From Selaginella moellendorffii (Eukaryota; Plantae; Lycopodiophyta): a stretch of 64,000 bases of DNA. The stretch is taken from NCBI RefSeq assembly GCF_000143415.4, contig NW_003314327.1, positions 149,116-213,115 of the forward strand. The letters are read 5' to 3'. Made by a program: the position numbers and the translations under genes. The first letter of the stretch is position 1. Every line of letters begins with the position of its first letter. Positions 13,070-64,000 of this stretch are shown here, piece after piece. A model generated the notes under the pieces. The model saw only the letters and a list, made by a program, of their open reading frames with translations. It searched no databases and was not told the origin of the DNA.

Positions 13070-13263
13070 TGTAAGCTCCTGAGTTTGGACTTCCCGGGAG
13101 GTCACCCAACCCAGTACTATTCACACCCAAGGACGTTTAACCCCAAATATCCCAAAACCCTTAACCGATTGGAAAAAGAAGTGCACTCTTATTCATAGGC
13201 CCTTTCCCTCTATATTTGAACCCCATGGACCGTCTCTCGAGTCGTTCTCTTTGGTTGCTTACA
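13070..13263 (-). mobile_element. Cassandra solo LTR (194 bp), inverted, nested in the Gypsy RT
   Basis: TGTAAGC...GCTTACA termini; perfect TSD CTGAC (13065-13069 and 13264-13268); reverse complement matches the LTRs above, including AATAGTACTGGGTTGGGTGACCTCCCGGGAAGTCC. Confidence 0.93.
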
Positions 13264-14760
13264 CTGACTTCATTGATAATGTCTTGATCTGTTCGGAGGG
13301 GACGTGGGAAGAACATATTTGTGATTTTTGTAAGGTATTGGATTAATTACAGAACATTAGTTTAAAGTTAAAGTGGTCAAAATACGTATTTGGATCCAAG
13401 GACACAACTTATGTTAGATACCATATTTTTCGTGAAGGTTTGCAAGTTGATCATGACAAACTTATGGCTGTTCTAGAGTTTCCTACTCTGAAGTGTGTGA
13501 ATAATGTACAGTGCTTTTTGGGCAAAGTGCAGTATCTCGATTGTTTTGTGAATCATCTTTCTGATCACATTGCACTATTGCAAGCATTGCTAAAGCCCTT
13601 AATGTAATCCTTCATTTAGTCTATGGACTGTGAGTGGGAGTTCATAGATTTCAAAGAGCTATTGACGACTCCTCCGGTTTTGGCATATCCTGACTATACT
13701 CGACTTTTCATTTTGTGCATAGATGCTTTTAATATTAGTCTTGGAAGTGTGCTAATGCAAGAGAGCCCGAGTATGCCTCGTCAGTGCCATCCTATTGTAT
13801 ACATCAACCATATATTACAATTAGTAGAGGTGAACTATTTGATGATAAAGGAGTGTTTAGCAGTAATTTGGGGTTTCAAGAAACTTCATGTATATCTACG
13901 TGGTTCTTGGATGTTACTAGAAGGAAATCATGCTGCCATTACTTCATTATTGAAATGAAAAAACTTGATTAGTCATACTACTTGGTGGGCTTTGAAACTT
14001 TAGATATATGATTTTAATGTTTTTCATCGCTCTTAAAGTTTTATAGTTGATGCTGATGCCCTTTCTCGAGCTCCTCTTTCTTCTTCACTGTCTTCTCATG
14101 TTTTTGATAAGCATGTTATTCCAACATTTGTGGATTTCTAGACAAGGATTTTGTGCCATTGGTGGTAGTTGTACTTGACCTTCAGTGTCCACAAGATGTA
14201 GAGCAAGATTTACCTTTTTCTTGATGAGGTTCACAAGGCTCAAAAAATTGAACCATGGATTTGAAGGCTTCAGGATGGGTTTGAGAATCCTGCATCACTT
14301 GTTGATAACTTGCCATTCCGGCATTTACATTCTCAATATCATCTTGAAAACAGCCTTTTTTATTTTGTGGGGATGGATTCTGATGATCATTTGCGGCTGG
14401 TGGTGCCTTCCATCTTTATTCTATAGTTTCTCCATGCCTATCATGATTCTCCTGTTTTAGGCGAGCATATGGGACATCATCATATGACTAAGACATTGCG
14501 CAGGTCTTTCTATTGGCTAAAGATGTAACATGATGTTATCCAGTAGCTGCGTAGCTGCGTTTGGTGTGAAGCTCATAATACTCCCCCTTGTGCTACAGAA
14601 GAATGGTTAGAGTTGATTACAATTTTTCGTCCGTTTGAGTTAGTGGCATTTGACCTTATGGGACCTTTTCCATGATCAATTGCTAGCAATAAGTATGTTA
14701 TTATTGCTTATGATTATTTTATTTATTGAGTGGAAGTACCTATTTATATTAGCCTTAAAT

Positions 14761-14910: not shown

Positions 14911-15708
14911 GCTTGAACACTTCTTTAGCTGCAGCTGTACATTGTGGGATAGAATTTGTGTGCGCTGTAGCGGTGTAATCTCATGAGTTCTTGGAATTGA
15001 ATTTCCCTCCGAAAGTAATTGGGTAAAATCTTAGGGCTCGATGGTTTAAGCTTCAGGTCTTTTTTCTTAACTCCTCGGTTGTTACAAGGATGAACTTAAA
15101 AAGTAGCAAATTGGTGCAAAGGAAGAACTTACTGGGTCTGGAGGATGATTGAGAATCTCAAACTCAAAGCTCGCTGGTCTCGGAGGAAATCGAGACAAGG
15201 CAAATAAACTCTTTTCGAATATGCTAATCAGTTTCAGTTTGAGGATCTCTGACGACGATGGAACATCTGGTATTTCTTGAAAGTTTTGTTCACTTTCCAT
15301 AGTTTTCTCGCCTGCTTCGACGTACTGACAGTCATATTGCTATATATTAACCTTAAACGCCCAGTCCGGCTGGCTGGGATGATACATCGTCTCGTTCTCG
15401 GCTACAGAATAATTTATCAGGTATGCCTTATAGATTTTGCAAAAAACAAAAAGAACAGAAATAAAGAGAGGAAAGAGAAAAGAAAAAGAAATATTCCTTG
15501 CTAGCTGGTTTCTGATTTTCATATTGTTTAATTTTAGAGAAGGCATTTGGCGTTGCCTGCGTCTAAACACTTGGTGAAGCATATAGCCGGCACTTGCCTT
15601 ACCCCAGTTGCTATGCCATGGGCAGCCCGCCGGCTGAAACTCTTCGTAAGCGACAAACTCGAGCCAACTAAATCAATACATGGCACTGACGCTGGGATTT
15701 TAACAGGG

Positions 15709-17976
15709 ATGTTCGACGCACCCATCGAGCTTCTGCTTGTCATACTTCTCTGCTTCTGCCCCTCGTGCAAATGTCTCCTCGACATCGGGTTTCCAGGCAA
15801 TCCTGAGATTGCTGTTGACTCGAACTTCAACTGGACGCTCAACGGGGACCTCCATCCGTTTCTCTGCCAGAATTTATCCAAGCGTGCCTTCGCTGCGGGT
15901 TTTACTAGCAGCAAAACAGGTCTCTTCTACTTGGCGGTGTATTACGTAAAAGCAGGCGGTGAAAATCATACCAGCGCAGTGTGGAAAGCAAACAACGGAA
16001 GGCCGGTGCCTCTCGGTGCAAGTTTGAAGCTCCAAGTCGATGGAAACCTGGTACTCTATAATCCTGACGGCACCGAAAGCTGGTCGACTAAAACGTCTGG
16101 ACTTGGTGTGGCAGGCATGCGGCTGAATCAAACTGGAAACCTTGTTCTTTACAGGGAAGATGACCAGGTTGTGTGGCAAAGCTTTGATCATCCTACGGAT
16201 ACTCTTGTACCTCACCAGCTGATAAAAACGGGGATGAAACTAGTTTCCAGTAGTCCCGGTGGAACAGGTGAAGGATACTTTTCATTCGAAGTACAACCTT
16301 ACGCATTGGTCTTGTCCGCTCAGTCGCCTCTGCAGCGCTATGGAGTGTGGAAGTTCGACCAAGAGATTGGTTTTGTTGGCGTCAACTTTTCGAGCTTCAA
16401 TGTCTACAACAGGAAAATGACAGTTATTCAGTCGGTAGCACTGAGCATAGTCTACAGTGTGAGGAGAATACAGCTCTTCTCTACTGGAGAAGTGGTTGCG
16501 GACATCGACTGGGACATCCTCGATCTGACCAAGTTCTTCAATGGCTGGATTGGCTGGGATCTCTCTTATCCGGGGGTCTGCGGAAGATACAGTATGACCA
16601 GGGAAGGCGAGTGCCATTGCATAGGCTTGAAGTCTGACAAAGGCACGCAAACTTACTTGGAGCCAGTGGATTCTTTGGACGGCACGCTTGGTTGCCGTCT
16701 TTCTCATGAAGGGGACTTAGCTATGGAGTACAGGTTGGTGGCAGGGGATAAGTTCTACGACTACTTGCCGCTCAAGTTCATGCAAGGAGCTATCTTGTCA
16801 CAGGCGGACTGCCTGGAGACGTGCTTGACGAATAGTTCGTGCAAGGCAGTTCTTTTCGAGGACAACAATAGGACGTGCTTTCATCTCACGGAAGTTTACA
16901 CACTCAACGTGACAAGAGCTCCAGCGTTCTCGGCATTTATCAAGGTGAAAACCGGGACGTCTAAGTTGGTAGTACGCAACGCCAACCATAGCAAAACCGG
17001 AGTTCTTATAACGGCAGTCCTAGGGATTGCTGCGCTCACAGTGACAGTCATCGTCTCAGCGGTTGCTTATTGGAAGAACAAGGTTGATTTCTACTTCAAA
17101 AGCCGTCGACAGAGCTCGCAGGCTATAGTCTCTGGTGCTGCACAAGCTCCACGTCCTTTCAACTTGAGGGAGCTGGAAATGGCCACGAGAAACTTCAGCA
17201 AGAGGATTGGCAGTGGAGGATTCGGCACAGTTTTCGAAGGATCTCTGTCGGATGGATCCAGGATTGCTGTCAAGCTCCTTGACGATTCAAACCAAGGCGA
17301 GAAGCAGTTCAAGGCGGAGGTGAGAGCCATTTGCAACATCCATCACAGAAACTTGGTCACCCTGAGAGGCTACTGCTCTCAAAAACCACACCACTTCCTG
17401 GTTTACGACTACGTCCACAATGGCTCGCTCGATAGGTGGCTCTTCGACAGCAGCAAAGCGAAGAGCTTGGATTGGAACCGGAGGTTTTCGATAGTTCAGG
17501 ACATAGCCAGGGGCCTTGCATATCTTCACGAAGAATGCAGCAGCACAGTGCTGCACCTCGACATCAAGCCTCAGAACGTACTCCTGGACGAGAGCTTCAC
17601 GGCAAAGATCTCTGACTTTGGACTGTCCAGGATTCTCGGAGGCGATGGTAGAACAGACAATGCGGTGACTGCGATCAAGGGAACTCCAGGATACATGGCT
17701 CCAGAGTGGCTGACACAAACGAAAGTTACAAAGGCACTGGATGTCTACAGCTTTGGGATCGTGGTTTTGGAGATCATCACAGGCCTCAGTGCCGTGGATG
17801 AGAGGATGAGCAGGAAAAATGTATCAAGCACGCTTGAGGTGGTGATAGATCAAGGCATGGATAGGACCAAGAGAAGCAAAATAGAGAGGTTGATCCAAAT
17901 TGGATTGTGGTGCACGAAAGTGGAGCAAAGCCAAAGACCTTCGATGGTGGAAGTTGTTAAGGTGCTAGAAATCTAA
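15709..17976 (+). CDS. G-type lectin S-domain receptor-like kinase (SD-2 type), intronless, non-RD
   Basis: Signal peptide from ATG 15709; bulb lectin (DGNLVL..VWQSFDHPTDTL); PAN/apple CLETCLTNSSC; TM; kinase IGSGGFG, AVK, HLDIKPQN, DFG, GTPGYMAPE. Confidence 0.93.
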   Translation: MFDAPIELLLVILLCFCPSCKCLLDIGFPGNPEIAVDSNFNWTLNGDLHPFLCQNLSKRAFAAGFTSSKTGLFYLAVYYVKAGGENHTSAVWKANNGRPVPLGASLKLQVDGNLVLYNPDGTESWSTKTSGLGVAGMRLNQTGNLVLYREDDQVVWQSFDHPTDTLVPHQLIKTGMKLVSSSPGGTGEGYFSFEVQPYALVLSAQSPLQRYGVWKFDQEIGFVGVNFSSFNVYNRKMTVIQSVALSIVYSVRRIQLFSTGEVVADIDWDILDLTKFFNGWIGWDLSYPGVCGRYSMTREGECHCIGLKSDKGTQTYLEPVDSLDGTLGCRLSHEGDLAMEYRLVAGDKFYDYLPLKFMQGAILSQADCLETCLTNSSCKAVLFEDNNRTCFHLTEVYTLNVTRAPAFSAFIKVKTGTSKLVVRNANHSKTGVLITAVLGIAALTVTVIVSAVAYWKNKVDFYFKSRRQSSQAIVSGAAQAPRPFNLRELEMATRNFSKRIGSGGFGTVFEGSLSDGSRIAVKLLDDSNQGEKQFKAEVRAICNIHHRNLVTLRGYCSQKPHHFLVYDYVHNGSLDRWLFDSSKAKSLDWNRRFSIVQDIARGLAYLHEECSSTVLHLDIKPQNVLLDESFTAKISDFGLSRILGGDGRTDNAVTAIKGTPGYMAPEWLTQTKVTKALDVYSFGIVVLEIITGLSAVDERMSRKNVSSTLEVVIDQGMDRTKRSKIERLIQIGLWCTKVEQSQRPSMVEVVKVLEI

Positions 17977-27800: not shown

Positions 27801-28546
27801 ACGCAGCCAATTACAACACAAAAGAGAAAGAACACTAACGCTGACCCTTGTTATGTGCTCAGAGAACTCACGAACGCTCTCCACTGAGCACTGACAAATT
27901 ATAGCATTGAGCAAGTTGATTAAACTTAGACGTATCTCTTCGGAATGTTCAAGCACTGGAAGCTGCCCTGCCACAAAGTTTTCCAGATTAAAAAAAAAGG
28001 GAAAAATCATCACAGGACGTGATTACCAGTCCGCTCAGCTATTGCAGGAACTATCAAAAATGTTGTTTGCTCCACCTGGATCAAAAACTTTAGTACAAAA
28101 GTATTGGAATCTAAGAAACATACGTCTGCTAAAAGCTTCACAACTCTAGAAATCATGTTCACGGCAGCTTCTCGACACCTCTCCACGGGGTCGTGAAGGT
28201 TTCTTACGACCAGCTTCAGTATCGTCTCGTCCCAAACAATCTAAAACATCAACAAAATTTTTTTTGCTTGGGAGATAAAAAGAGGAAAGAAAAAATACCT
28301 GGAGCATAGCTGGAGAACGAGACTCGGTAACAAGAAGCTTGTCAAGGCGCTCCAATGCCTTTCGCCTGGTGTTTCGATCCGGGTCGGAGAGGCAGTTTAA
28401 ATCTCGCTGGATCGTCTGGAAGTATGAAAATCCATTACTGGAGCTCAATTACCATGGCGCGATTCAATGCGATCGCTTACCTGGGCGAAATCCGCGGCAG
28501 CTATGGCTTGATCCACCGCATTCGAGGGAGCGTCATCGGCATCCAT
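24806..28546 (-). CDS. DNAAF5: Dynein axonemal assembly factor 5 (HEATR2), HEAT-repeat protein, many short exons
   Basis: N-terminal IQRDLNCLSDPDRNTRRKALERL; EHSEEIRL; LSDSFHEIKKASC; HAHSRVR; KRLDDSNDGVR; C-terminal VRSKHQSSQYCD, all as I recall for HEATR2 orthologs. Confidence 0.8.
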
Positions 28547-28653
28547 CGCAAAGAGCAAAATCCCTGCTAGGTAGGCTTAGGGCAACGAAAATTTTAGAGG
28601 AAGAATAAAAACAAACAGTAAAAGTATGCTCTTCTAGGTGTTCTTTGTGAGCT

Positions 28654-29756
28654 ATGGAGTCTCCGTTTAACAGCGAGGCGCTCCAGGGCAAGGTAGCGCT
28701 CATCACTGGCGGAGGATCTGGGATAGGGTTTGAGATTGCCACGCATTTTGGCAAGCATGGAGCGAAGATCGCCATCATAGGACGCCGGAAATCGGTGCTC
28801 GATGAGGCTGTGGAGAAGCTATCCTCGCAATCCATCCAGGTAATTTTCAAAGGGATCAATGAGTTTTGAGCTGGATTATCCCAGGCATTGGCAATCGAGG
28901 GGGACGTCCGCAAGGAAGAAGACGCAAAGAGGGCGCTCGATTCGACAGTAGCGAAATTCGGGAAGCTTGATATTCTGGTGAATGGAGCTGCGGGAAATTT
29001 TCTCTGCCTTGCCGAGGATCTCTCTGTCAACGCATTTAGAACAGGTAGACGATTCTTCTTTCTTTTCTTTCTTTTTCTTTTCTTTTGTTTCATCAGTTCT
29101 AACACTGAGAAAAAAAATGCAGTTCTTGAGATTGATACTGTTGGTACGTACAACATGAGCCACCATGCCATGCATTACTTGAAGAGCGGCGCGCCAGGAA
29201 AGAAATCCGGTGAAGGTGGTCTCATAATCAACATAACAGCCACTCTCCAATTCTCCGCGGCGTGGTTCCAGACTCATCTAGTTTCAGCAAAGGTAAGAGC
29301 TCGATCTAATATACCGTCTAAAAGAGTTTGCATTTTCGTTTCTCAATCCAGGCAGCGATTGACAGCATGACAAGAAACTTGGCCCTTGAATGGGGAAAAG
29401 ATTATAACATTCGAGTGAATGCTATTGCTCCAGGACCGATCAAAGACACTCCAGGAATGTCTAAGCTTGCTCCTGACGAGATAAACATTCGAGACAGTCC
29501 TCCTTGGGGAGAGAAATGGGACATTGCCATGACTGCCATTTTCCTAGCGTCAAGTGCTGGTATGTTGGTTTTGCGATGGCATTTGTTAACTCTTTCATTT
29601 TAACCAGGCAAGTATGTAAATGGAGCGATTATTCCTGTGGATGGTGGAGCCTGGTTTCACAGACCTCCACACTTTCCAAAAGAAACCATTCGTTCGTTGT
29701 CGAGAGTGGTGGAGAAGAGATCACGAGTCGGTTCTAATACCAAAAGCAAGCTGTAA
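28654..29756 (+). CDS. Peroxisomal 2,4-dienoyl-CoA reductase (SDRb-like)
   Basis: MESPF..GKVALITGGGSGIG, LVNGAAGNFL, EIDTVGTYNM, LALEWG.DY.IRVN.IAPGPI.DTPG, VDGG; ends in PTS1 -SKL*. Confidence 0.93.
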
Positions 29757-29957
29757 GTATACGATAAACTTGTTTAAAATAACACATTTCTTTCGCAATA
29801 TAACACCATTTTTATTTTTATTTTAACTCGGTTTTTTTTTTCCTGCTGATATATATTTTGCGTGTGAGTTTGAAGTTGACTTGAGCGTGGAAGCATGGAT
29901 TGTGGGAGTAGCCATCGATTAGCCAAGGTACTCTTTGCTAAATACTCCAGTAACATA

Positions 29958-31159
29958 CTAACTTCTTGACTCGCAGGTGAACGAGGCTGTGAAAGAGTTC
30001 GTGCCGAAAGACGAGTTTTTTTGCTTCCTGGTCCCCCAAGAAGGCGTACTGTCCGTAATGAGTGCGTCAATCGACTTCTGAAACCTTGCAAGACTGTTGC
30101 TGTCTTGAAGGCCTACAAGAAATCGCGTTACGGTTTGCATGGTGGGCCTCGCTTCTGGTAGTTCATCGCAGCAGGACATGGCCATCTCCATTACAGAAAG
30201 CATTTGTTCCTGACAGAGCAGTTCCTGCTGCAGCTGTGGATCCAGAACATCAGTCCAGCGACCGCTATCGAGAGCTTCTTTCGTCCAGTCTCGCAAAGTC
30301 AGGCCATCACCGAACTCAGCGCTCGTTGGAGACTTTCTGGTTAGAAGCTGCAGCATCACGATTCCAAAGCTGTAAACATCTGCTTCTGGCGACGGTTTCT
30401 CGCCTAAGAAAACCTCTGCAGCAAAGGTAACAAATGCCGTTTTCGGTACGTAACGCTCTAAAAACTTTACGTTTTACCTGGAGCAGTGTAGCCTGGCGTG
30501 AGCAGGAAACTGGTGATTCTCTTCTTCTGCCGCAACTGCTGCTCGACAGTTTTGGCGAAGCCAAAGTTTCCGATGTGTGCCTCAAACTCGTCATCGAGCA
30601 GAATGTTGCTGGGATTCAAGTCGCAGTGGACGAACTGCTGCTTGCAGTTGTGATGCAAGTAAGTGAGACCTTGCGCAACTCCTACGGCTATCTTGTACCT
30701 CTTGCTCCAGTCGAGACTAATGTAAGTGTGCCTCTGCTGCAGCTTGCTCTGGAGGCTTCCCTTGGGCATAAACTGGACAATGACCGCCATGAAGTCGAGA
30801 TTCGAGAAGTAGCCGAGAACTGGCAAGATGTTCCTGTGCCTGATGCGTCCCAGGACATGCAACTCCGTGAAGAAGCTCTTGTGTCTCACGGGACGTAGCT
30901 CTCGTCTTCCAAGCTCCAGCTTCTTGACAGCCACAACGTTTCCGTCAGGAAAGACGCCCTTGTACACGGTGCTGAAGCTCCCCCTGTCCAGGATGTTGCT
31001 AGTGCTAAAATTCCCGGTAAGCGCCAGGAATTCGCTCTCGCTAAACTTAAGCATCTGTGGCAGCCGGAAGTAAGAAGAGCTATCATCGCCATCGTCGTCG
31101 AAATCGCCGCTGCGCATCGCTGCGTGAGAGATGAAGCTGGGGAAGAACTGTGCAAGCAT
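29958..31159 (-). CDS. Receptor-like cytoplasmic kinase (LRR-XII/XI-like kinase domain, no ectodomain), probable pseudokinase
   Basis: Two exons (31159-~30477, ~30416-29958); LDRGSFSTVYKG, VAVKKL, RHRNI, HCDLNPSN, IGNFG, TPGYTAPE, DVYSFG, RPTM. Confidence 0.85.
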
Positions 31160-36910: not shown

Positions 36911-38498
36911 ATGGCCACCGATTCTTCCAGCTCCAGCTCGGGTTCTTCCGTCGTGGTAGTAGTTCCATTGCCGGCTCAGGGACACACTCCAGCGCTTATT
37001 CACCTCTCCAGGAAACTAGCCGCAGAAGGATTCTCCATCGTGATCGTCAACGTCGAGAGCGTCCACAGGAAGATCGCTGCGAGATGGAAATGCTCGCCGC
37101 AGCTCGACATCCGGCTCGAGTCCATTCCGTTCACATCGTCCATTCCGACCAGGCTCGACGCTCAAGCTTTGAGCCAACGACAAGAGCTGCAGAAGGCTTT
37201 GTTTGAGCTCCGAGTTCCCTTGGAAGAGCTGCTGGTGTCCAGACTTATAGGCGAGCAGGGGCTGGAGATCAAATGTATCATCTCCGACTTTCATGCGGTC
37301 TGGACGACTCCGGTGGCACAAAAGCTGGGAGTTCCTCAGGTGTGCTTCTGGTCTGGATCTGCAGCTTGGGCTTTGATCGATCGTCACGTACCACTGCTTG
37401 TTGACTTGGAATACATTCCAGTACCAGGTATGAGTTTTTCTTTTCTTACTCGCAGTAACCAATCTTTCGTAGAAGCAAGTTCATCGCCTTGTGTGGACGA
37501 CGATTCTACTACACAAGGTAAGAAACTAGAAACTTTTCTAGCCAGCGTTTTCTTACCAGATTTCTTTCAAAGGTTGCAGCTTGAGAGGTGAAAAGATGAT
37601 TTCTTTTATTCCGGGGATGGATCCCTTTCCAGCCTTGGATCTTCCATACTACCTTCAGGAATTCTCCAAAGTGCCAGTGTGGAGCCTGGTCGCAAAGTCT
37701 CAACGTTTCAACAACGACAAGTGGTTCATCGCCAACACTTTCGAGGCACTGGAGCCGAGAGAAACACAGGCCATGAAGCAGCTACTGGGAGAGCAAAACT
37801 TCCTGGCGATCGGGCCTCTCTTGCCGCTGGATCAAGAGGGGCTGGAACAGGTGGTGAGCCTGGAGGAGGAGGAGCTGGGCTGCCTCGAGTGGCTAGACTC
37901 CCGGCCGGAAGGATCGGTCCTCTACATCTCTTTTGGAAGCCTGGCGGTCCTCACGCAAGAGCAGTTCATGGAGCTGGCACTGGGAGTAGAGAGCAGCGGC
38001 ATTTCATTCCTCTGGGTGATCCGACCAGCGTTCTTACCGCAGGGAGATCTTCCGACCATGGAGTTTTTCCAGGGATTTAGGGACAGGATGGTGGCGGAGA
38101 AGAGGTCGATCATCGTCCCGTGGACGCCTCAGAAGAGGGTGCTCTCGCACGCGTCCATAGGAGCGTTCTTGACGCACTGCGGCTGGAACTCGATCGTGGA
38201 GAGCGTGTGGAGTGGAGTGCCGATGCTCGGGTGGCCCTGCCACTCGGATCAAAACTTGAATTTGCGGCTGCCAGTGGAAAGTAAAGGGATTGGAGCTCGC
38301 GTTGCTTGTAGCTCCAGGAGGATGGAGGTGGTGCACAGGGAGAGAGTGAGGGCGGTGGTGAGGAAGGCGATAGAGGATGGAGGAGAGATGAGAGGGGCTG
38401 TCCGTGAACTCCGGGATCTCGCGGTAGCGGCAGTGGTAGAGGGTGGAAGCTCGAATAGAGACATGGCCACCTTTGTCGAGAGATTGAGATCATTGTGA
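36911..38498 (+). CDS. Family-1 UDP-glycosyltransferase
   Basis: VPLPAQGH; CIISD; one intron (~37428-37577); PSPG box WTPQKRVLSHASIGAFLTHCGWNSIVESVWSGVPMLGWPCHSDQ; GGSS. Confidence 0.95.
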
Positions 38499-40367: not shown

Positions 40368-43408
<3,041 letters not shown>

Positions 43409-48677: not shown

Positions 48678-51163
48678 TTAGTGAGTAGCAGCAGGCCTCC
48701 TCGAAACTGGCCTGGCTTTCAGAGGATTGACCATCTCGCATGAGAGCTTGAGCACCTCCGACAGGTCCACGGGGCTGTCCTCGCAAGGCATCCACGAGAA
48801 CTCCTGGACAAGCCTGGCGATCCACAGCTTCACGGTCGCGAGTCCCAGTGCCCGGCCGGGACATACCCGCCGCCCGGCTCCAAACGGCGCCAGCCTCAAG
48901 TCGATGCCCCGGACGTCGAAGCTCTTGTTCTCCACGAACCGCTCCGGGTCGAAAGCCTCCGGGTTGGGCCAGATGCTGGGGTCGTGCGTGATCGCCCACA
49001 TGTTGACCATGGCGCTGGTGCCCGCCGGGACGTGGTAGCCCGAGATCTCCACGTCATGCGTCGCCAGACGGGCCCAGGAGAGCAGCGGACCCGGCGGGTG
49101 GAGGCGGAGAGTCTCGTTGATCACGGCCTGGAGGTAAGGCATGCGCTCGGTGTCCGAGTCGCGGACCGGCTGGCCGGCCGGGCACACCGAGTCGATCTCC
49201 GACTGGAGCTTGCGCTGCACGTCCGGGTTGAGAACCAGCTCCGCCAGAGCCCACTCTGTGAGGATCGCAGTGGTGTCAGTGCCTCGGAAAATCATCTCCT
49301 GCGTACACAAACAAAAGAAGCTCCTGTCAGTCAGTGACTTGAATATAACTGCGTTGGGTGGCGATTGATGAAAACAAACAGCACTGGACAACAGCCGCTT
49401 AGTCAGTCAAGCAAAGCAGATTTGCTCACTAAACAATGTGCGTAAAAGACTACAGCCAGCAAGGACCGGCTCAAACACAAAACATGAAGCACACATGGAA
49501 TGCAAGCTTCAACAGTGCAGGCGAAGGCCAGGATGGAGAAAGAGAAAAAAAAAATCGGGAGAGAGCGAAGAAAAGCCTGAGTTTTGATGTAAGGAGAGGA
49601 CTGGTTGGTCAAAACAAAGTGGCTCCAAGGACGAAACGACAAACAAGCTTTGTACGCAGAAATTCATCGACCACCGTCCACACGCAGGACGAAGCCGAAT
49701 CGGTGCTGGCTGTTGAGAGCAAAGCCAACGCCCAATTTACAAGGCGAGATGGATGGCTATGGCCCCGCCCAGCGTGACCATTACGGCCCTTGGCTTCTTT
49801 AGAGCAAGCGAGCCACAAAGAAACGACCAGCAAACAGCGCCGTATACACACCCGCAAACAAAAGCGAACCGAAAGTAAAAAAAACGTTTAAAAAACACTC
49901 TGGGATGTCCTGGGTTGCGGTACATCAATTTGGTTCACCAGCTAAAGAGCGTTGCTCAACCCACAATCAAACAAAGGAAGTGAAACGAGAAAAAACTTTA
50001 AAGCCAAGCTCGGGAACGAGTAAGCACAGACGCATGAAGGAAAGAACGCGAAAGCCATGAAGACAAGCGAGAAAAGATCCAACAAATGCAATGCTAGAAA
50101 AAAAACCAGAGAAGAAGTTACGTACCCAGAGCACCGCGATCATGTCCGACTCCTCGAGCTTGTCCTCGCCTTGGAGCGAGAGCAAGACGTGGACGAAGTC
50201 CTCTCCACCTCCGGCAGCTTTGGAGCTGGAAGAATTCTCCTCCTCCGCCGCCGCCATCTCTGCCCGGCGCTCCTGGATAATCTTCCTTACAAAAGCGTTC
50301 ACGCGAGGAACCAGCTGCTGGCAGCGCTTCACCACGCCCTGGGGATCCCACTGCCTCAAGAATGGGAGATGGTCGGACCAATTGAAAGCGCCCAGAAGCT
50401 CAAACCCTTCGCGGACCATCGCCTGGACCTCCTCCTCACCATCGCCGATGCGTCGCCCAAACACCGACCTCATGACACTGTTGAGCGAGGCGCGCTGGAC
50501 GAATCCACGCACGGCGATACCGCCGCCATTGGAGCGGGCGGCGCTGCCGGAGATATCGGCCACCATGGCGGCGGTCTCGGCCTGGCGGAGCGGCTCCTGG
50601 GCGGCGATCCGGCGGGGGGAGAAGAGGCAGCCCGATGCAATTCGTCGCAGCCGGCGCCAGTAATCGCCGTAAGGAGCGAATCCCATGGCGCGCCCAAAGA
50701 GAAGCTCCTGCGCGGATTGCTTGAGCGGGCGGTCCGCGAAGCAGGGGCTGGCGAGGATCTGGCGCGCCACATCCGGCAAAGACGACACCACCATGCGCGT
50801 GGATCCAACGCTCACCGCCATAAGCCTCTCCGCCGAGTGTGATCGCGCCAGGGCCGCCAGGCGGCGGTGCGCCAGCGCTCCCATGTCGAGGAGGCTCCCC
50901 AGGACGGGGAATCCTCGCGGTCCCGGGATTGCAGCGGCGTTCTTCATCTTCTTGCTAAAGATCAGCGATCTTCCCCACGCCGGGCCGCCGGGGAAGCACC
51001 AGAAGAGGATTGCCGAGGCGGCAAAGACGCAAAGAAGCGCCAGCGCCAGAGGGATCCAGGACGGCGACGCCGCCGCCGACGATGAATCCAGCCACGGCTT
51101 GGCGATGAGCGGCAGCAAGTAGACCAGAGAGCTCCTCCCAGCGGCGCCGCTGCTGGAATCCAT
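48678..51163 (-). CDS. CYP78A: Cytochrome P450 CYP78A (KLUH-like)
   Basis: [50 protein letters not shown]|[30 protein letters not shown], heme [10 protein letters not shown]; single intron ~49299-50124. Confidence 0.96.
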
Positions 51164-52888
51164 AGCCACGGATCGTTTCTTGGACACTGGATCACGAGAC
51201 GAGAATATTTCGCCAATGCAACAGTAGCGCCGAGCGATCCACCAAGAACGCGCCAATTCGCGGGAGGCGAGCAATGCGCTAGAGTGAGGATCGAGATCGA
51301 GAGAGGGGATTGAGAGAAAGATCGAGAGGAGAGAAGATTTTTGCTTCGTCGCTCGCGCTTTGACGCTGGCCTTGGTCTTCTTCCTAGGCTTTGAGAGAAA
51401 ATGGGCCCGTGAAGGAACTATTTCTAGCCCCCTACTAAGTAAATCCCGCGCGTTCCCACTCACACGCTGTTTAGTTTGGCAAGCCCGCCAAATTCTTCGC
51501 GCTTATTCTGGAAATATTCTTCAACAATTCCACGGAGAATCTGACGGTCGTGACGGGCCCGAGAATGACATGTCAGCATACCGCCCGTCCTGTAGAACCC
51601 TACCTATATTTACTATAACGGCGCCGGCGCTGCAATCACTCCGTACGGCCTCGATTTGTGGCCATATGGCCAGCCGCCGCGCCGCGCACGTATAATTTTC
51701 CCAGGCGAGTGTGGGGATTCTACCGCATGGGAGAAAGTAACTATGACATTTCCCGTGGGGAATTTGTGCTACGTGGCGGGAGGAGATGAGAGCCTGAAAG
51801 CGATGTTAAAGTAGTGTGGCCTATTTATTAGGGCATGGGCCGCCACCTTTGTTGCTTACACGAGGATGCATGCATGCATGAGTGTGGCAGACATCGGTTT
51901 CGAATGTATAACCTCCTCCGCCAACCTTTTCTTGCTGCGCGTGTCGACAGGGCTGTGTAACAATACTTCGGGTTCGGATTAGGGCTGCCGCCGCAAAGGC
52001 GTCAATGGGAGGACACCAAGTAGAGCGCCACAGAAAGCAACACGAGCGCACAAGGCTCAAAGGAATCTACCGCTCCAGGTGCACAGCCACCCACGGAATC
52101 TTCCAGAGTTACCTCTTTTACTTTTCCAGAGTTACGCCTTTTTTTAACCTTGTCGTGAAGTCTCGAAAGGAAAATGCATGAATTTCTGGACCGCCAGCTT
52201 ACCATGGCCTGGCCGCAATCAAAAGCAAAAGATTGGCGGTAAAATCAACACCATACTAAACAAAGAGAGGAAACCAGGGTAAAAAGTTGGCGGGGAGAAA
52301 GATTCTCGAGAATCTTTGTCGTTGGGTCTGTGGATGTCAACGTTGATCTTGACGGGCCAATGCGATTGCTTTGCGTCGGATCGAAGGAAACGAGCGCTTT
52401 CATCCTCCAAATCCTCGAAAATCCACTCCGGCCCGACAGGTTACATTGCACCGTAGCGCGAGCTTCCTGGAATTCCTTCGTTTTTAGTAGTATAGAGAAA
52501 AGAACACAATGGAAAGTTGAGGAGACCCTCGGCCCCCAAGGAAGGAAGAAAGAAGGAACAGCTTTCACAACATTCTCAAAAAGCTGGAGGGAAGAGTGAG
52601 AGTACCTTAAGAGCTGTGCGTCCCCTAGAAGTTGACACGGTTCCCTCATCTACAAGCCTCCATGGCCCCTCCTGGATGGGAATGCTTCACCAATTTCGCA
52701 GCGTTTCAAGTCTTCCTGGATTTCAAAGAGAAAAAATCCAAAGAAAATTAGTATACATCGTCATGTGATGCAGCACCAGCGATATAAAACCAAAGAGTCA
52801 AACAAATCCAACCTGCTTTTTGTGTCACTCCAGCGGAAGTCACCGACAAGGAGAAGCTTCTCGCTGTTGAATCGAAGTTGGCTTCGAT

Positions 52889-55800
52889 TCATGCGCTTGC
52901 CGGTGCCTGTGCTTGGCTGGAAAGAAGCTTCGTACGGTAGTCCGTCAGTTCGGCTGCCACGCCGCCCTTCTTGTAGCAGCGTGCCTGGAGAGAGGAGATG
53001 TACTATTGTTTTCCCTCTAGACAACATAGAAAAAAGAATTCTTTCACGAAACTTCTCACCTGATGAATGAGTTGCTCCAGAAAACTGGCCTTGTCGACCG
53101 GGATGTCTGGCGTTGACAGTAGCTCGAACAACTGCTAGTGAGAATGGCGGTTAGTCGCAAATTCCGTATCGAAGAAACGAAAAAAAGAGAAAAAATCAAA
53201 CCTTGTGCGTATTGTTTGTCTTCGCATGTCTTAACGTCCGCAGAGCTGCCAAAACAAAGTCGCTCGCGTCTCCCAAGAGCTTTCTGCGTTTCTCGGACTG
53301 TGCAGCCGACTCTTCGTGGTTGCCACCTTCGGGATTCCTGTGAGGCACAGAAAGGATTGCAGCTTCCGGTGACGACGAGCCTGCCTCGTCAGGGTCATCT
53401 CGAACGTCGGACAGTTCCTTTGGACTCTTGGCGGGCGAGTTCACCTCGCCACCGCTTGCATCACTGCTGCATTCTCCCGACGAGGCAGACGAAGTGGAAG
53501 CTGATCCCGACAGGCCCGGTGACTCGGGGCGCCGACGCCGCTTTCGTCCTCGTAGCTGAGCTCCGCCGCTTCCTTCAAACCATGCTTCGTCTGCGGCGTC
53601 GTGTTTCTCCTGACGATACGGGTTTCCAAAGAGCGATCGTTGTTGCTTGGTTCGCTCTTGTTCGTCAGCCTGATAATGAGAATTTTTCAAGTTAGAAAAA
53701 CGGGAAAAGAAAATACATGATGACTTACAAAAGGATTTCGCGGAGGCTGTTGCTTCCACAGAGCGTCACTAAAGTCACCCATCTGTATGTTCAAGGATCA
53801 AACGCTTGAGCGACAAAAACGAACAAAAAAAAGCTCATCACCTTTTCGATAGGTAGCGAGTGACGTGCTTCTTCTTCTTCCATGGCCACCATACGAGCTG
53901 CCAAATTGCCCAAGGCTGAGTGGCTTCCAGTATTCCCAGGGGCTTTCTCGTTTTTACTTCGAGCGTCCATGGCAAGCGCTACACGCATTGGCAAATACTT
54001 GAGCTGGCTGGAAAAAGAGGGGGAAAAAAAAAAACAATCAGCAACAATCTATCTCACCCACGGCTCGAAGAGAATTGACTACCTGAAGAGCTCGTTACGA
54101 GGCACATCAAACGCATTTTTAAACACCGCAGCATCCTTCCACGAACCAATTCCCAAGTGGTTGGCAATTTCATTGCCAGCTTTTGGAACTTCGGCAGTAG
54201 ACGCTTGAGTTGTAAACCTCGCATTTTGATTTGGTTTTGAAGGTCCAGACGGAATGCAGACCTCGAACGTCCTCTGGCTGAGAACTGAGTCGACGCTGGT
54301 TGTCGACGACGAAGAAAAGCGGACAGAAAATGCAGTAGTAGTGAACGTGTGCGTTCCAGGAGCATCGATGGAACCGGATTTTGAAGACGGAAAGACTCTT
54401 TCATGTGGCTTGGGGGCGTAAGAACTTGAGTTTATCAGCTTCTCCGTCTGTAAAATATTGTCTAAGATTTGCAAGAGAACGAGAAAATCTAAAACATTAC
54501 CATACTCTCCAGCTCCGTCTTTGCCTGAGCTTTCAACCGTTTGAGCTGGTTTCCAACAAAACCAGCAAAAATTGTTTTCTCGAGAGCATCCGGCACAACA
54601 TGCAGGTTCAATCCCCACTGCCGAAGTGCAGCTCTCAAGGGCGGGCCATAGTACGCCGGAATACTGTTGCAATATCGTTCCATTTCTTGTCGCCACTGTA
54701 TTGTGTTTGTAGCCTTTGGATTTTTGCTAGCGTGCTCCAATAGATGAAACAGTACCTGATAAAAAAGACTACGTCAAGTTCAAGCAGATAAACATATTTA
54801 CTTACTGGATAATTGTATGGTAGCACGAAAAGTGTGAGATTTGACCCAATAAGCTTGAGATACCTGTTGTAAGAACCATAGAAACTAACTTAACCAAAAA
54901 TCACTTCTTCATACCCAAATGGATCTCCATAGCCAAAGTTTGGCCCCTTACTATTACGTATGAAGACTTGCCAGCATGCATTAGCCGCTGCTTTCGTCAA
55001 AAAGTTCACAATCGGGTTGGACTCGATCTGCAAAGAAGCTCTGGAAAGTTAGGCCTTACAAGTCCCTCAACTCAAGCGCTTACGTCGTACTTATCGTAGA
55101 TAAACTGCGCGGGAATCGATGGATCCGAGTCGATAGCTTTGTAGACAATAACAGGATGAGGCTCTCGAGGAGGAAGAGATTGCTGTGACGAGTCAGGCCA
55201 AAAGGTCTCCGGTATTGGCCAATGCCCCTGGTGAGGCTGATTGGCCCTGATAAGCAAGAGCTTTCGTTGGCAGGCAGCATGAACCTAGCAGAAAGAAAAA
55301 AAAACATAAAAGTTGTAAAGAAACATCAAGATATAGTACAAACCTGAGGCGGCGGAGCAGTGGTTCCGGGAATTGGCATATTTTCGAAAGACACCACCAC
55401 GCAAGTTGAGAGCCGAGATGTGACTTCAATGTGCTGCATTAAGATTTTTAAACTTGTTGCCACATAACATTTTCCCCTACGTGAAGATAAACTCTATGAG
55501 CCAACGGAAGAACCAAGACAAGGAAATAAGAAAAGATACAATATATCAAGCACGTACCCAGTCGACTCGCAAAACGCAGAGATGTCATTGTCCATTGCCA
55601 GAGCCGTTTTAGAACCCGAGATAGGAGCATTCTGCGGAAGAGGTCCACTCCGTTCTAATACTTGCTGACTGACCGATGGCATCCTGCATACGAAAAGTCA
55701 TGTAAACCACAGCAGAAACCAGATAGCTCACCTGAGAACAATCGCAAAGACTCTTTGATCCCAGCGGTAAGGCTTTGCAGCTAGCTCGCCACCTGCAGGA

Positions 55801-56559
55801 GCCGGACCATTTGGTACAATGGTCTTGAGAACACCTGCCTAAGATACGCACAGAGAATATAAAAACGAGACTTCAAATCGAGACTAGAAATACTTTAGAA
55901 GTGAGTTCTGTTCCATCCGTCAACAGAATAATCGTCGTTGGTTCTATATGTATAGGATTTCGCCCCTGACCTGGAACAAAACGCTGTAAGAGACACAAGG
56001 CAAAAGAACGAGTAAGAAACATACCATACTTTTCAGTATCGTTTACAAGCCGATGAAGGTGAAGGTAGTCAAGAACTAGCTGTAACGACGTACCAATTTC
56101 CGTGAGATCGTGAGCTTCAATGCTCTTCAGTGCTCGCGTGAAGTTAACAAACGGATATTTGTCGACCACCTAGAAACAGAAAAACACAGAAGAAAAAAAA
56201 CACAAAGAACTTGAGTTCCATAAGTGATAAAACAACTAGGCCAGATCGAAAGAAAAGATCACCTTGATCGCATTTACTCCCTCTTCGCAAGTCACAAGGA
56301 GATATCTGGGATAGAAATGCGGTAAACAAATGCTAGAGCTACTAAATTCTCACGCACCTGTCCGATTTGTGCCAAGTGATGTCTCGCAGCCGCAACTGGA
56401 GCAAGAGAAAGGGCAATGTAAAGAGATTTGGATGGAGCTCCAGCGGCTTACCTTGACGAAATGCTCCACGGCACTCTTGGCGCAATCCAGCAGCGACAGG
56501 CCATTCGAGCAGCGCTGGTTCATCGACGCGCTAGTATCGATCACAAAAACCACGGTCAT
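52889..56559 (-). CDS. INTS6: Integrator complex subunit 6 (INTS6/DDX26-like)
   Basis: N-terminal VWA VVFVIDTSASMNQR..GLSLLDCAKSAVEHFVK; YG.GRNP..IEP..IILLTDG; EPLRWDQRVF; GHWPIPE.FWPD; PFGY; VLPYNYP; IPAYYGPPLR.AL; C-terminal FLEQLIHQARCYKK. Confidence 0.88.
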
Positions 56560-56688
56560 CTCTACGGGCACTAAAAACCTAGCTCCAAGGGGATAAATAT
56601 ATTAGGGCTCCTCGAAATATGTTAAATATGGCTTCTACGACCTTATCAGGTTTTTTGGTATTTTTGGTATTTTTAGGGTGAACTGATC

Positions 56689-57399: not shown

Positions 57400-60300
57400 A
57401 ACACTAGTATTAAGCAAACCAAACGTTGCTACATGCAACGCGTAGCAATTTTTTTCTATATATGATCTATATTTCCTTTTAAATGATCTCAATTCATCCT
57501 TTTCGTTAATTGGGTTAACAAAATAACTACTAAGAAATTGTGTTAATTACTCCCCACGAATTTAAAGATATAACTCAATTATCATCTTTAATAATTTCAT
57601 CATTGACTTGTATCATTCTCTTCTGGGTTTAACAAAATATTTCTTATTTACAAAGTTTTAAACCTCATCAAGTTTGTTTCTTAATGCCTTTTTAAGCTTT
57701 TAAGACCTTGAACCAGTTCTAAAGAGAAACCCAATACAAAAAGGAAAACACCAGAACTTATACCTTTGATTTCCTTTTGTTACTAGACTCCTTTATCCTT
57801 TCAAAATAAAAAAAGATCTAAGAAAACAAGAAAAAAAAACCTATTGTAAGACATAATAGTTAGCCTGCTATGATGTGATGGAAAACCAGATAGCCTAAAA
57901 GATCCAGCCAACTCTGTAAGGATGTCAATTGCCTTATTATGGTGCAATAGAAAAGGATGTTAGCTAGCTTGCTATGGTATGATGGAAGACTAATTGGGAG
58001 CCCAAAGGATTTAGCTATTTATCATTGCTGCTACAAGGGCTTTTTGGCACTTAACTCTGTAATATAATTGGATGAAAGAAATTTAAATAGATTTTAAATA
58101 GGGTTTTTATTAAAGAAAATTAATAGTAAACAGTTAGATTAAGGATTATCATAAATATACTTAAATATTCTAACTATATCCAGATGTTCTATTCCATATT
58201 TTTTCGTTTGCTTTAGAAAGCCTCGCATTGCTCTATCAAAATATTGATTGACTTTATTCTAATAAATTCAAGTATATTCTTATATCTAGATTAAACTTTT
58301 CTTTAATTCACAGTTTAATGTTAACATTATTAATTACTTTTAAATTTCCAAAACTTCATTAATTAGCTTACATAAGTATTTAGTTTGTATAAAAGTATAA
58401 AGCAATTGATAAGCAAGTCTTTAGAAGGGACAAAAGAATAACCAACCTGTGGTAAGTGTCGTGACATGTAAAAGTGACTAAAACTGAAAGACTCAAAGTA
58501 AAATAATGTTAGAACCATCTTGATCACCAAGAAACCAAATGTCTAAATTGACAGATATATCTAAAGCTAAATATATCTAGGGCCAGAGTGTCAAATATAT
58601 TTAAAGCTGAATGTATCTAAAGTGTGGTGAAAGCCTAAAGTGATTTCCTTCTAAACCTTAGGGAATTCAATAAGTCCTTGCAAGATAGTGGGGAGGAGGA
58701 TGTCCCCATTTATATTGTCATCCATCACCCATTTGATGGATGGATCGATCAATATAAAATAGAACTAATGCTGCTAAATAAGGTTATACTCATGTGGTGG
58801 GTGATAATATAAATATTAAAGAGTCCAAAATTAAACTAAACATGGATGGATAAATGGGCTAATGTGATAAAATGTTCAAGAATTGGCTCTATCTCCTTCG
58901 AAAGATGAAATAGTTAATACTCCCAATCTAAGTATGAATGGCTTTATCTACTTAGATACTTTATAGTTTCAATTTGTTACCCCTAAGCGACTGCACATGT
59001 GACTCATTGGAAACTCACTCTAGCCATATTATTAGGGCATTTTGGTGGTTGAAGGTGGTGGGAGTACCTATAAGGTTTATGTTGAGCTATAATATTTCGA
59101 AATGTTATCCTAAAGTTTTAATTGTGGAAAGAAAGAAGAGTGATTTTCTTACTTAGTAGCTAAGGTTATAATCACGTGGTGAAGAGGTTTTAAAAATCAA
59201 GGATGGGCCTTTGGGCCCTAACTCAATGGCCATATTAGTGAATATTGTCGTAAATAGAGAGTAAATAATGTATATTCCTACCTTTAAATTTAAAATTATA
59301 TATATTGAGCATCCATATATACATCCTTCCTTTTGTGGAGCATTCATGAACAAAAATATTCACCATGAAAGTGTTGTATAGGTGGATGATTAGTTGCTTC
59401 ACATGGAATAATTGATCTACACAATGGAAGGATTAATAGATTCATTATAAAAAATAAAAGTGTAAATTCCCTTTAGCTCAGTAGATGTTATTATTACTTT
59501 AGAAGATAAATAGGGATAAAATAGCCATTAAAGGCTTTCTCATTAAGCAATGACCTTCTTTCCAATTAGTTTATAGGGGAGAGATAAGTGTACTTCAAAA
59601 GAATATTAAAGGTTTAGATCTTGAGTTATCCTATGGATGTTAAAAAGTAGTAATAAAGTAACCACTTATATATAATTTTGTATTGGAGAGACAAGTTTAC
59701 GATACAAAAGGTGACCTAGTGAGAATTTGCATGACTTTAATATAAAAGGTTGATATGTTAAAAGTACATAAAAATGCAAAGTTAATGTAGTTTTGAAGCC
59801 ACTTTTAGGCTCTTGGTAAGTATCTTAATTTGAAATAAAAAAGTTGTGAGTAAGACTCTTCCAAGTCAAAGATGTGATTAAGGTAACTAAAATAAAATAG
59901 AAAATTTAATCATTTACAACTTAGTATCAAAAAATTTCTTTAGTTTAATTTTTATTAGTGGTAAAATATATCAAAAACTTCATAATGACATTTTTAGGTC
60001 CTAGGATTAGAATTAAACTTGAGGAATAGGATATTATGAAAGTGTCACTCTTCACTTTAATTCTTCTGTGAACAAGAAAAAAAACATGGTGGATAGAAAG
60101 AGGGTCAATAAAGGAATGATTTTAGAATTTAGAAGGTTTTCCTTATAGTTATTTATATAAGGGTATAATTTAATAAAATTAGTTTTAATATAGTTGTGGT
60201 AAATAACTATAGTTGAGATCATTTAAAGAAAAGGAATTATTAAGTAACAAAGAAGTCATAGAATTGCCTTTATATAATTGAGGATGATGTTTATAAATGT

Positions 60301-63300
60301 GAAATTGGAATTGATGAATGTGGGCGGTCAATATATGATTGAGAATATATATTCTAAAGATGGTAATTTTAGCTACCTTTTATAAATATTAAAACAACTC
60401 AAAAACTTAAGAGTGTAAAGGACAAGTTGGCTTTTTCATATTATGTAAAAGGGCAATACAACTCAAACAAAAATGAATATTTAGGTATTAAAATATAAAT
60501 TATTTTATTCAAGTGAGGTAGCACTTCAAGAGTACCCATAAAACTATGACTTTATAGGTCGTAGAACTAATAAATTTAAATGTTAAATTAATATCAAATG
60601 TATAAAGGAAGTAAATTTAAATGAAGGTGATTATAATGATCTTGAGATTTAATTATATAAACAGAAGATATATCATTAATGACTAAAAGTGTTATACTAT
60701 AAAAGAGAAAAAGTTTTATGGAGGAAAGTAACTTTTATGAAGATTTATATTTTTATACAATAGTGAAACCAAGCCAATATAAATTATTTGTACATAAGAA
60801 ATTAGTTATTGTAAAAGACATAGATACAAAGTCATAAGAATTGATTGATAAAGCAAATAGTATAAAAATACTAACTATCTCATTAGAAAACATATTGAAA
60901 AGGTCAAAATGGTTAGTTTAGGAATTTTTGCTAGGGAAATCTTGAAAGAAATAGGATTGGTATAACCTAAGTTGAAAAATATAGAAATAAAATGTTTTGA
61001 TGAAATGTGGAAGTTGAAAAAATATAATAATTATGAGGTAACTAAGTACAAGTTTGATATAATTATCTAAAAAAGTGAAAGCTAACTTCTCAAGATTTTT
61101 GTTAGCCCTTCTTAAATCATTAAGTTTATCCCTAATAATACATACTAAGGTGAAAATAGTAAATAAAAAGTTCGCGTACAAAAGAAGAAGTGAAAAAAAC
61201 ATATAGAGCCAAAAACAAGTAATAAAAAGATAAACCTAAACTATAAAAATAAAGGACATAATAAATGATCATTATGTAAATTAAGAAATGTAGTAGAAAA
61301 GTGGTTTTAAGGTTTGTTGTAAAGTGAGGCTATTAAGATTAGGGAAGTAATTCTTACATGTTTAAAAGAGTTGTTTTGAAAAAGAAAGTATCATTTAAAT
61401 AAATTTATTTAAATGATTTAAAAGAAAGAAGCTATAATATGAATCTTTGATGATTGTTAGATTTTATAAAATAAATTACCAAACATAGTTGAACTTTACT
61501 ATGGTTTCATATACTAATTTTTTAAAAAACTTTATCTATGCTATAAAAATAAGGCTATAAAATTAATATCTCTCTTAAAATAATGGAATTCTGTGATTTA
61601 TCCTTTTTTATTTTTGAAAGTATTCAACTATTTTATAATTTTAATTTTTAAATATCGGTATAAATCAAAAGTAATAAGCTTATTTTTAACCAAAAGTATA
61701 TAAAGGGGAAAAAAAAATTTTATTTTACATGTGTTCTTGATAAACAGTAATAGTAACTTATTATTAAATAAACTAAAGAACTAAAGATTTTTTTTCTTTT
61801 CTTTTTTAGTGATAGACTCTAATCCTAAAAATAGTATAGTGATTTCCAAAATAATGTATGTGAATAAATTCAATGATAAAATAATAAATATTTAATTTAA
61901 TTTTATATATTTCATATGCTTTCTTGAATTGTAAGTCTTTCCAAAGAATGAACATTAGAAAGATAAAAACAATAGAATAATAAATCCAATTTATATTAGA
62001 TAATATGTCAATTTTTCTGTTGCATTGAAATAAATTTTTTCTTTTATAATATTTTTATTTTCTCTCTTTCTTTATATTTAAAGAAAATAACTGTTTCANN
62101 NNNNNNNNNNNNNNNNNNNNNNNNNNNNNNNNNNNNNNNNNNNNNNNNNNNNNNNNNNNNNNNNNNNNNNNNNNNNNNNNNNNNNNNNNNNNNNNNNNGT
62201 CATTCATGACGGCGATGTGGCGTCATCATATCTTGTAAGATTTCTATCTCATTCACCATAACATTTAATGTAAAGTGTTTTTATCCTAAATACTTAATTA
62301 TTACTTTATTATAATTTCCATTATTGCACCTTAACATCACTCTTCCTTCACTGTGACACCCCAACATTCTCCTGAAATTGTGTTTTTCAATACTTTGATT
62401 GAAAAAGGATGATTAGGATGACACACTCCTAATCAAATTAAATAGTGCATTAATCAAAATATAAATTGGCTAAACATTGTTGTTAGAGAAGAAAACACTT
62501 TTAAATACCTTTTTAAAGTAAAAGTAAGATGGAGTAATAATACTATACACTAAATAGAGAATAGGAGCAAAAACAATTACTTGATAAGAATAAGTTTAAA
62601 ATAATGTTTGAAGAGTGAATACATAGGAAAAGTTAACAAAAAAAATTTAAATGGTAGTTTTTTATTGATATAGTTTGAAATTACTCTAGAGTAAGAAGTA
62701 AAGTGGAGATAGAGAAAATATCTTCTAGGGATTTAGTAGGATTTAAAACGCAAAGAAATGGAATTTAGGGGCTAAGCCCAAGAGTTAGAGGATATACTTT
62801 CATTAAATAATGTGCAAAGTATAATATACATTCAATATTAAACTATTGATGAATAGTGTTTTTGTGACAAAAATAAAATGGTAATCCTTGATAAAATTGC
62901 TTTAGAAAATAAATTAATAGTTAATAAGGATATTGGAGTTGTAAAACACAAGCCTTAAGTCCCAATATGGAGCCAAAAATTTACCATATAGCAGTAGCAA
63001 AACATGAATATAACATGTTTAGACCAAAACCTTTGACTTAAAAATTCAAAAGTGGGAGTGGAATTCTCTAAAAAGCACTCATAAAACAATCATCGATAGG
63101 GAAGGATTTTAAAGAAATTAGTGTGACAAAGGAAAGTTATACCTATATAATAAGTGATAATATAAACATTGGGGAGTTTGAGGTTAAATTAAACATGAAT
63201 GAACAAATGGAGTGATTTAGTGAAGTATTCAAGAGCTGGCTCTATCTCTTTCAAACAGATTAGATAGTTAATACTATTAATCCATGTATAAATAACATTA

Positions 63301-63700
63301 CATATTTAAATACATTATATGGCTAATCAAAACTTCATTTTAGCCACATGGTTAGGTATATTGATGGCTGAAAGCATCTATAATACTTGTGTTAAGCCAT
63401 AATATTTTGAAGTGTCATCCTGAAGTCATTGATTCTTAAAAGAAACAAAAGTGATCTTTTTGCTTAGTAACTAAGGGTATAATCACATATTGAAGTTTCA
63501 AAAGTTAATGGGACTTAATGGACAGGCTTTTAAGCTCATTCAGTAGCTATATCGTGAATAGAAGGGATTTAGTGAGGATTAAATAAAAGATATTAAAGGA
63601 TAATATTTTATAAATCTTGATGCATTCTAAGGATGTTAAAAAATGGTCATAGGGTGATCACTCATAAAATAGATGGTTTTGTTTGGTTTGTGGTATATAT
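57400..63700. mobile_element. Very AT-rich decayed repeat block, unclassified
   Basis: No intact ORFs; contains two diverged direct copies (~58780-59270 and ~63135-63570). Confidence 0.45.
62099..62198. other. Assembly gap (100 N)
   Basis: Run of N seen directly. Confidence 0.99.
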
Positions 63701-63888
63701 GGTCTTTCCTTACTGCCATGACAGCAAGAGGTCAGTATTGCTAGTTCCCTTTATCAACCCCTTTTGTCCAAGTGTTAGTAAACTGGATTTAGCATCTGTA
63801 CTTGGCCGGATGAGCATAAGGAATGAGTGCCTGTAAAGACTAGCCAACAAGTAACTTTCGATACCCGAAATCACATTCGTTACAATCT

Positions 63889-64000
63889 GCCAAATGTTAA
63901 TCAACATGTGGTGTAATTCCCCTAAACCCAACTAACAAAGTCAGACCCAAGACCGCTTTGATACCAAATTATAAATGACTAAAATAAAATGAAAAATTTA
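63889..64000 (-). mobile_element. LTR-retroelement 5' junction: tRNA-iMet PBS plus leader homologous to the Cassandra internal region
   Basis: Minus strand TGGTATCAAAGC (63966-63955), followed by sequence matching 12287-12364; the putative LTR runs off the window end. Confidence 0.75.

Follow-up and report, generated by a model that had tools for sequence, protein, structure and literature searches.

The analysed window is a stretch of 64,000 nucleotides from contig NW_003314327.1 of the lycophyte Selaginella moellendorffii. Ordinary plant genes are located at positions 15547-17976, 28533-31159, 37581-38498, 41587-43050, 49967-51463, and about 52000-56571. They include genes for a B-lectin/PAN S-domain receptor kinase, a second kinase, a UDP-glycosyltransferase, a glutamate-receptor-like protein, and a cytochrome P450. 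The last gene of the window, positioned on the minus strand, encodes a homolog of Integrator subunit 6 (INTS6, XP_002985247.2). Two direct repeats of about 700 nt, at 6315-6991 and 8437-9077, are 77-88% identical and 2.1 kb apart. They are possible LTRs of an old, small element, and the open reading frames between them have no Pfam match. The 287-base segment 63682-63968 near the end of the window, referred to below as the island, is read on the minus strand and contains at its 5' end a fragment related to the Cassandra retroelement.

A complete Cassandra-type TRIM is present on the plus strand at 12092-12687. It is composed of LTRs at 12092-12286 and 12493-12687 and a 206-nt interior at 12287-12492, and has the TSD GTTAG/GTTAA. 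The Cassandra-defining search motif was that of Kalendar et al. 2020 (PMC7215508). An inverted solo LTR at 13070-13263, located 380 nt from the complete element, has a perfect TSD (CTGAC/CTGAC). The three LTR copies give 5S_rRNA matches below the threshold, with E-values of 0.003-0.04, and box C with one mismatch is present in two of the three. The two LTRs of the complete element are 89.3% identical, and each of them is 87-88% identical to the solo LTR. Both the TRIM and the solo LTR are nested in a single decayed Ty3/gypsy element, in its reverse-transcriptase/RNase H region, where reverse-transcriptase motifs are readable at 12800-13060 and an RT_RNaseH_2 match covers 13623-13958 (E 6e-20).

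The minus-strand segment 63889-63968 resembles the PBS of the Cassandra TRIM 12092-12687 together with the 66 interior bases that follow it. The shared module consists of a TT spacer, the PBS, and a 66-nt post-PBS leader. Its global alignment to Cassandra positions 12287-12364 has 86.2% identity (69 of 78), with nine mismatches, of which eight are transitions and one is a transversion, and one 2-nt gap. A blastn comparison within the window aligns 81 columns at 86.4% identity with an E-value of 1e-20. The sequence-only reading of this DNA had reported the same alignment, with about nine substitutions, nearly all of them transitions, and a single 2-nt gap; its coordinates and base counts are correct. 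When the 64 kb were scanned with two degenerate sub-patterns of the module, only these two sites matched, where none are expected by chance, and a 24-base leader pattern has no match in the viral and metagenome collections. The tRNA-iMet PBS of Cassandra TRIMs is recognizable in the fragment, where the PBS TGGTATCAAAGC at 63955-63966 of the minus strand differs by one mismatch from the tRNA-iMet PBS TGGTATCAGAGC. In the Cassandra copy of the window, the PBS at 12289-12300, TGGTATTAAAGG, has three mismatches.

Two CpG sites of Cassandra, within CTCGGG and TCCGAC, are TpG in the fragment. Because these changes are on the side of the fragment, its module would have been nearly identical to that of Cassandra at the time of its arrival, and the fragment copy appears to have decayed from a Cassandra-like state. 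The identity of 86.2% compares with 87-89% among the Cassandra LTR copies of the window. Therefore, the divergence of the leader by itself is no mark of a separate family. Two hairpins are predicted in the leaders of both the fragment and Cassandra, and five out of five in-stem changes keep the pairing. However, two sequences cannot provide covariation, and the folding energies are no better than those of shuffled sequences (z-scores of -0.17 and +0.38), so we claim no conserved folding of the leader, to which the sequence-only reading had looked for support.

The homology to Cassandra starts at the LTR/PBS border. In front of the TGG of the PBS, just 'A TT' is common to both sequences, and the 32 nt positioned 5' of the fragment PBS do not resemble the end of the Cassandra LTR. 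At the 3' end of the module, the homology stops abruptly at base 80, at ..CATTTGGC. Both sharp boundaries, with DNA unlike Cassandra on either side, had already been described from the sequence. The approximately 200 nt past the module are no more similar to the remaining Cassandra interior and LTR than shuffled controls, as determined in local, global, and purine/pyrimidine-collapsed alignments. Homology along the whole length of the interior is therefore absent: bases 1-80 align, and bases 81-287 do not. This distal part of the island, 207 nt at minus-strand positions 63682-63888, has alignment scores within the range of shuffles, and no second copy or template of it is present in the about 90 kb examined. 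A weak likeness between positions 63826-63878 and the 5S core of the Cassandra LTR is not significant, as 25 of 200 shuffles score as high. At minus-strand positions 63758-63769, a purine run, GGACAAAAGGGG, with T TG after it, is a weak candidate for a polypurine tract. Its distance of about 200 nt from the PBS resembles the 206-nt interior of Cassandra, and the 75 nt past the run do not match the start of the Cassandra LTR.

The sequence beyond position 64000 was reached through the annotated S. moellendorffii INTS6 homolog protein, in the interval GL377631.1:192004-215674 of assembly GCA_000143415.2. This interval, reversed into the orientation of the fragment, is called L001. Its positions 2560-4361 are 100% identical to window positions 64000-62199, and a window coordinate equals 66560 minus the L001 coordinate. 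L001 1-2559 provides 2,559 bases beyond the window. The homeologous locus on scaffold GL377578.1, called L002, aligns only from the equivalent of L001 3844 onwards, which leaves about 1 kb between its end and the site. In this intergenic region, identity between the two homeologous scaffolds is only 81-92%, and an extra 3.2 kb is present in L002 at its positions 956-4147.

No part of L001 1-2591 recurs as a direct repeat downstream as far as INTS6, which is positioned 7.4 kb past the PBS, indicating that there is no LTR pair. The sequence-only reading had proposed a second retroelement with its own LTR past position 64000 and had made the proposal dependent on that LTR; the 2,559 bases past 64000 form none, an outcome that this reading had itself named as counting against the proposal. 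A 3' LTR matching the 32-nt flank of the PBS was not found within 760 nt. A match of 23-33 nt at 59886-59918 was considered as an LTR end and rejected, because it belongs to an old paralogous repeat. The two direct LTRs and 5-bp TSD of a Cassandra TRIM are absent, and no TSD is definable at the fragment. A long non-coding interior within LTRs, as in a LARD, is likewise excluded, since no LTR pair is present. As for the old repeat pair A/B, described below, it lies on both sides of the island and is not a pair placed around it. Part of the internal region is common with Cassandra, as in the 5S-less Cassandra-like TRIMs; however, the non-5S LTR pair of such elements is missing at the locus, where the purine run is suggestive at most.

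The 5S-derived LTR sequence that the motif of Kalendar et al. 2020 places 5-200 nt upstream of the PBS is present in the reference element 12092-12687 but not in the fragment. Neither L001 1-3200 nor window positions 62500-64000 contain a 5S_rRNA match at E<=1, and the 200 nt upstream of the fragment PBS do not contain box C with up to two mismatches. The fragment had been described as devoid of a 5S LTR, and the absence of both 5S and box C extends over the 2.6 kb upstream. A tRNA gene was not found upstream of the fragment in L001. On the strand of the fragment, the DNA from the PBS to INTS6 contains no open reading frame longer than 100 amino acids and no Pfam match, and thus no gag-pol of an autonomous element, in agreement with the earlier statement that none is readable downstream in the window. 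Open reading frames near the locus had no exact counterpart on record, and a 73-aa frame over the island gave no match in a protein word search, a blank that carries no information.

The flanks of the island belong to an old AT-rich repeat. The left part of copy B of this repeat forms the 5' flank, at 63976-64000 and on to about 64051 (L001 2509-2584), and is not an LTR of the fragment; the right part forms the 3' flank at 63106-63681 (L001 2879-3454). The paralogous copy A, at 58752-59960, is without the island. The right flank is 61-70% identical to window positions 58752-59685 (L001 6875-7808) and to L002 6990-7890. The left flank, L001 approximately 2509-2584, aligns collinearly to paralogs A1 (L001 6600-6676) and A2 (L002 6757-6789), in a match that is positioned about 200 nt before the right-flank anchor and has a 33-nt core with 85-88% identity. 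Three of 1000 shuffles and about one in 100 decoy windows score as high (p about 0.003-0.01), for a paralogy that rests on about 75 AT-rich bases with a second similar AT-rich motif nearby. The interval between the two anchors measures 296 nt in copy B, island included, and is taken up by 200 unrelated nt in the paralogs, so there is no clean empty site. The alignments indicate that the DNA touching the PBS belongs to the old repeat and does not represent an LTR of the element from which the fragment came.

The AT-rich repeat unit is ancient and at least 1.2 kb long. Its two copies are 4 kb apart upstream of INTS6, with 61-70% identity, and GL377578.1, the homeologous scaffold, also carries one of them. 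A small palindrome, TGACTAAA ... TTTAGTCA, is positioned immediately 5' of the PBS at 63969-63997 of the minus strand (L001 2563-2591). The palindrome motif is also found in the paralogous copies, with non-compensatory changes.

Upstream of the fragment, L001 1-2112 (64448-66559 in window coordinates, beyond the window end) contains a heavily decayed Ty1-copia-like relic on the opposite strand. A GAG-pre-integrase match (gag_pre-integrs, E 0.007) is followed by integrase motifs in canonical order, which were identified by eye from the six-frame translation. Most other pieces of the relic have no Pfam match, and a protein word search with a 110-aa piece of it was blank, which is uninformative. 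An iMet-like PBS, TAGTATCAAAGC, is located on the reverse strand at L001 2110-2099, about 300 nt before the copia-like gag.

The island (L001 2592-2878, window positions 63968-63682) has a GC content of 0.41 and CpG o/e of 0.42. Its distal 207 nt have the same composition as the shared module, with a GC content of 0.41 and CpG o/e of 0.46. The corresponding values of the Cassandra copy 12092-12687 are 0.46 and 0.41. The 479 nt to the left of the island have a GC content of 0.28, contain no CpG (o/e 0.0), and end with ..TTTATAA and not with ..CA. The right flank has a GC content of 0.30 and CpG o/e of 0.13, and the copia-like relic, which is nearly devoid of CpG, has values of 0.35 and 0.06. 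Compared to the decayed flanks, the composition of the island indicates that it is younger than, and foreign to, both sides.

The reading that we favour, with a probability of about 0.7, is that minus-strand positions 63682-63968 constitute one inert relic, about 290 bases long, of a Cassandra-related, protein-less LTR retroelement within an older repeat. This reading is drawn from a single copy of the island. The relic has no terminal repeats at either side and no genes. It is a younger, less decayed patch in a CpG-exhausted AT-rich repeat, beside an opposite-facing dead copia-like element. The identity of the leader, its two CpG to TpG changes, the distal 207 nt unlike the Cassandra interior, and the spacing of the purine run fit a source in a TRIM-sized sister lineage or in a subfamily of Cassandra that had another distal interior.

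The patch may have originated from a product of reverse transcription or from an element copy stripped of its repeats. In the replication scheme of LTR elements, the minus-strand DNA ends at the U5/PBS border before the second strand transfer (PMC10886601). As the breakpoint of the relic is exactly at this border, the most economical route would be that a chromosome break captured a cDNA still unfinished, and this is the one we prefer from the position of the breakpoint, with neither junction microhomology nor a second example behind it. Alternatively, a complete insertion may have eroded. In yeast, Moore and Haber and also Teng et al., both in 1996, reportedly observed the capture of Ty1 cDNA at chromosomal double-strand breaks. 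The fragment is similar to such captures in being an LTR-less piece at a non-integrase junction, one end of which coincides with the end of a replication intermediate; it differs in that its capture would be deduced only from its starting point. Judging from the known leaders of retroelements, the shared 80 bases may constitute the cis module for priming by tRNA and, probably, for recognition by helper proteins, which Cassandra and its relatives would require for their copying in trans.

The island could also be a patchwork, in which 80 bases came from the cDNA or a copy of an ordinary Cassandra and the next 207 are unrelated DNA pasted in by repair, either in the same event or in a later one. 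Such an origin would agree with the leader identity, which equals the divergence within the Cassandra family, with the sharp stop of homology at base 80, and with the absence of retroelement architecture at the site. However, GC content and CpG o/e are uniform over both halves of the island and unlike those of the flanks, which favours one source and one event, and the 90 kb examined yielded no other template from which the 207 nt could derive. We therefore consider patchwork filler unlikely.

It is less probable still that the locus preserves the 5' part of a second family of LTR elements, whose own non-5S LTR would lie past 64000 and which would be the helper, progenitor, or sister of Cassandra. 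The PBS of the fragment is better preserved than that of the Cassandra copy, and the distal 207 nt differ from Cassandra but resemble the leader in age and composition, as if both came from one foreign lineage; a precedent has been published in Asteraceae (PMC10853983). These properties have to be weighed against the 2.6 kb of upstream DNA that pairs with nothing downstream, and against a flank that is CpG-free, ends with ..TTTATAA instead of ..CA, and aligns to older paralogous repeats. Since gag-pol is absent in the orientation of the fragment, the helper option in particular is unsupported at the locus. The sequence-only reading had named the locus a candidate helper; we reject this role, because there is no LTR pair past 64000 or elsewhere at the locus, no gag-pol on the fragment strand, a flank made of old repeat, and a sole coding relic that is on the opposite strand.

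The least probable explanation, for which we see very little room, is that the opposite-strand copia-like element was inserted a few bases upstream of the PBS of a once complete element, the 5' LTR of which would now lie on the far side of the copia-like DNA, at more than 2.6 kb from the window end: L001 2113-2584 could be the 5' LTR of the copia-like element abutting the fragment, because of the iMet-like PBS about 300 nt before gag, but the copia-like relic and this block, with CpG o/e of 0.06 and 0.0, are more decayed than the island at 0.42 and thus look older than it, which makes splitting less likely, part of the block is common to paralogs A1 and A2, the seven bases before the spacer (TTTATAA) are unlike the Cassandra LTR end, and no 3' LTR follows the island.

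The relic, as we favour reading it, can be compared to several known groups of elements. It shares with the Cassandra TRIM (Kalendar et al. 2008, 2020, PMC7215508) the tRNA-iMet PBS, the first 66 interior bases, and the non-coding character. However, it has neither a 5S-derived nor any other LTR, its interior is dissimilar after base 80, and it has no definable TSD. Maiwald et al. 2024 (PMC10853983) described complete Cassandra-like TRIMs from Carduoideae that lack the 5S promoter and have part of the interior in common with Cassandra, and put them forward as progenitors or intermediates. The fragment resembles these TRIMs in that part of the Cassandra interior is kept and the 5S LTR is absent, and the idea proposed from the sequence of the window was the same. 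In contrast to the fragment, which is single, LTR-less, and from a lycophyte, the TRIMs of Maiwald et al. are complete, have their own LTRs and TATA boxes, and are present in many angiosperm copies. A model case for a TRIM and its presumed helper that have interior sequence but not LTRs in common is provided by the pairs Helenus LTR-1_PTrit / Copia-9_PGr and SMART / FRetro64 (Kojima 2024, PMC10886601). The partner in these pairs encodes gag-pol, whereas no coding partner with the module is present at the fragment locus.

Kojima 2024 (PMC10886601) found 'no indication' of an autonomous family behind Cassandra. Therefore, a coding element with the post-PBS leader of Cassandra would be valuable. 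The fragment locus does not supply such an element and cannot show who copies Cassandra. The relic is an example of a breakpoint positioned exactly at the PBS, and its only use is that the 207-base distal part is a specific probe for a sister lineage with the same leader in Selaginella. A bolder proposal, which we put forward tentatively and consider possible rather than probable, is that the island is the last trace in a lycophyte of a non-5S lineage that was sister or progenitor to Cassandra, with the same 80-base module and a different interior and LTRs. If this were true, the helper would recognise the 80-base module and not the 5S LTR, and intact members of the lineage, possibly also the helper, would be reached through copies of the 207-base distal part elsewhere in the genome.
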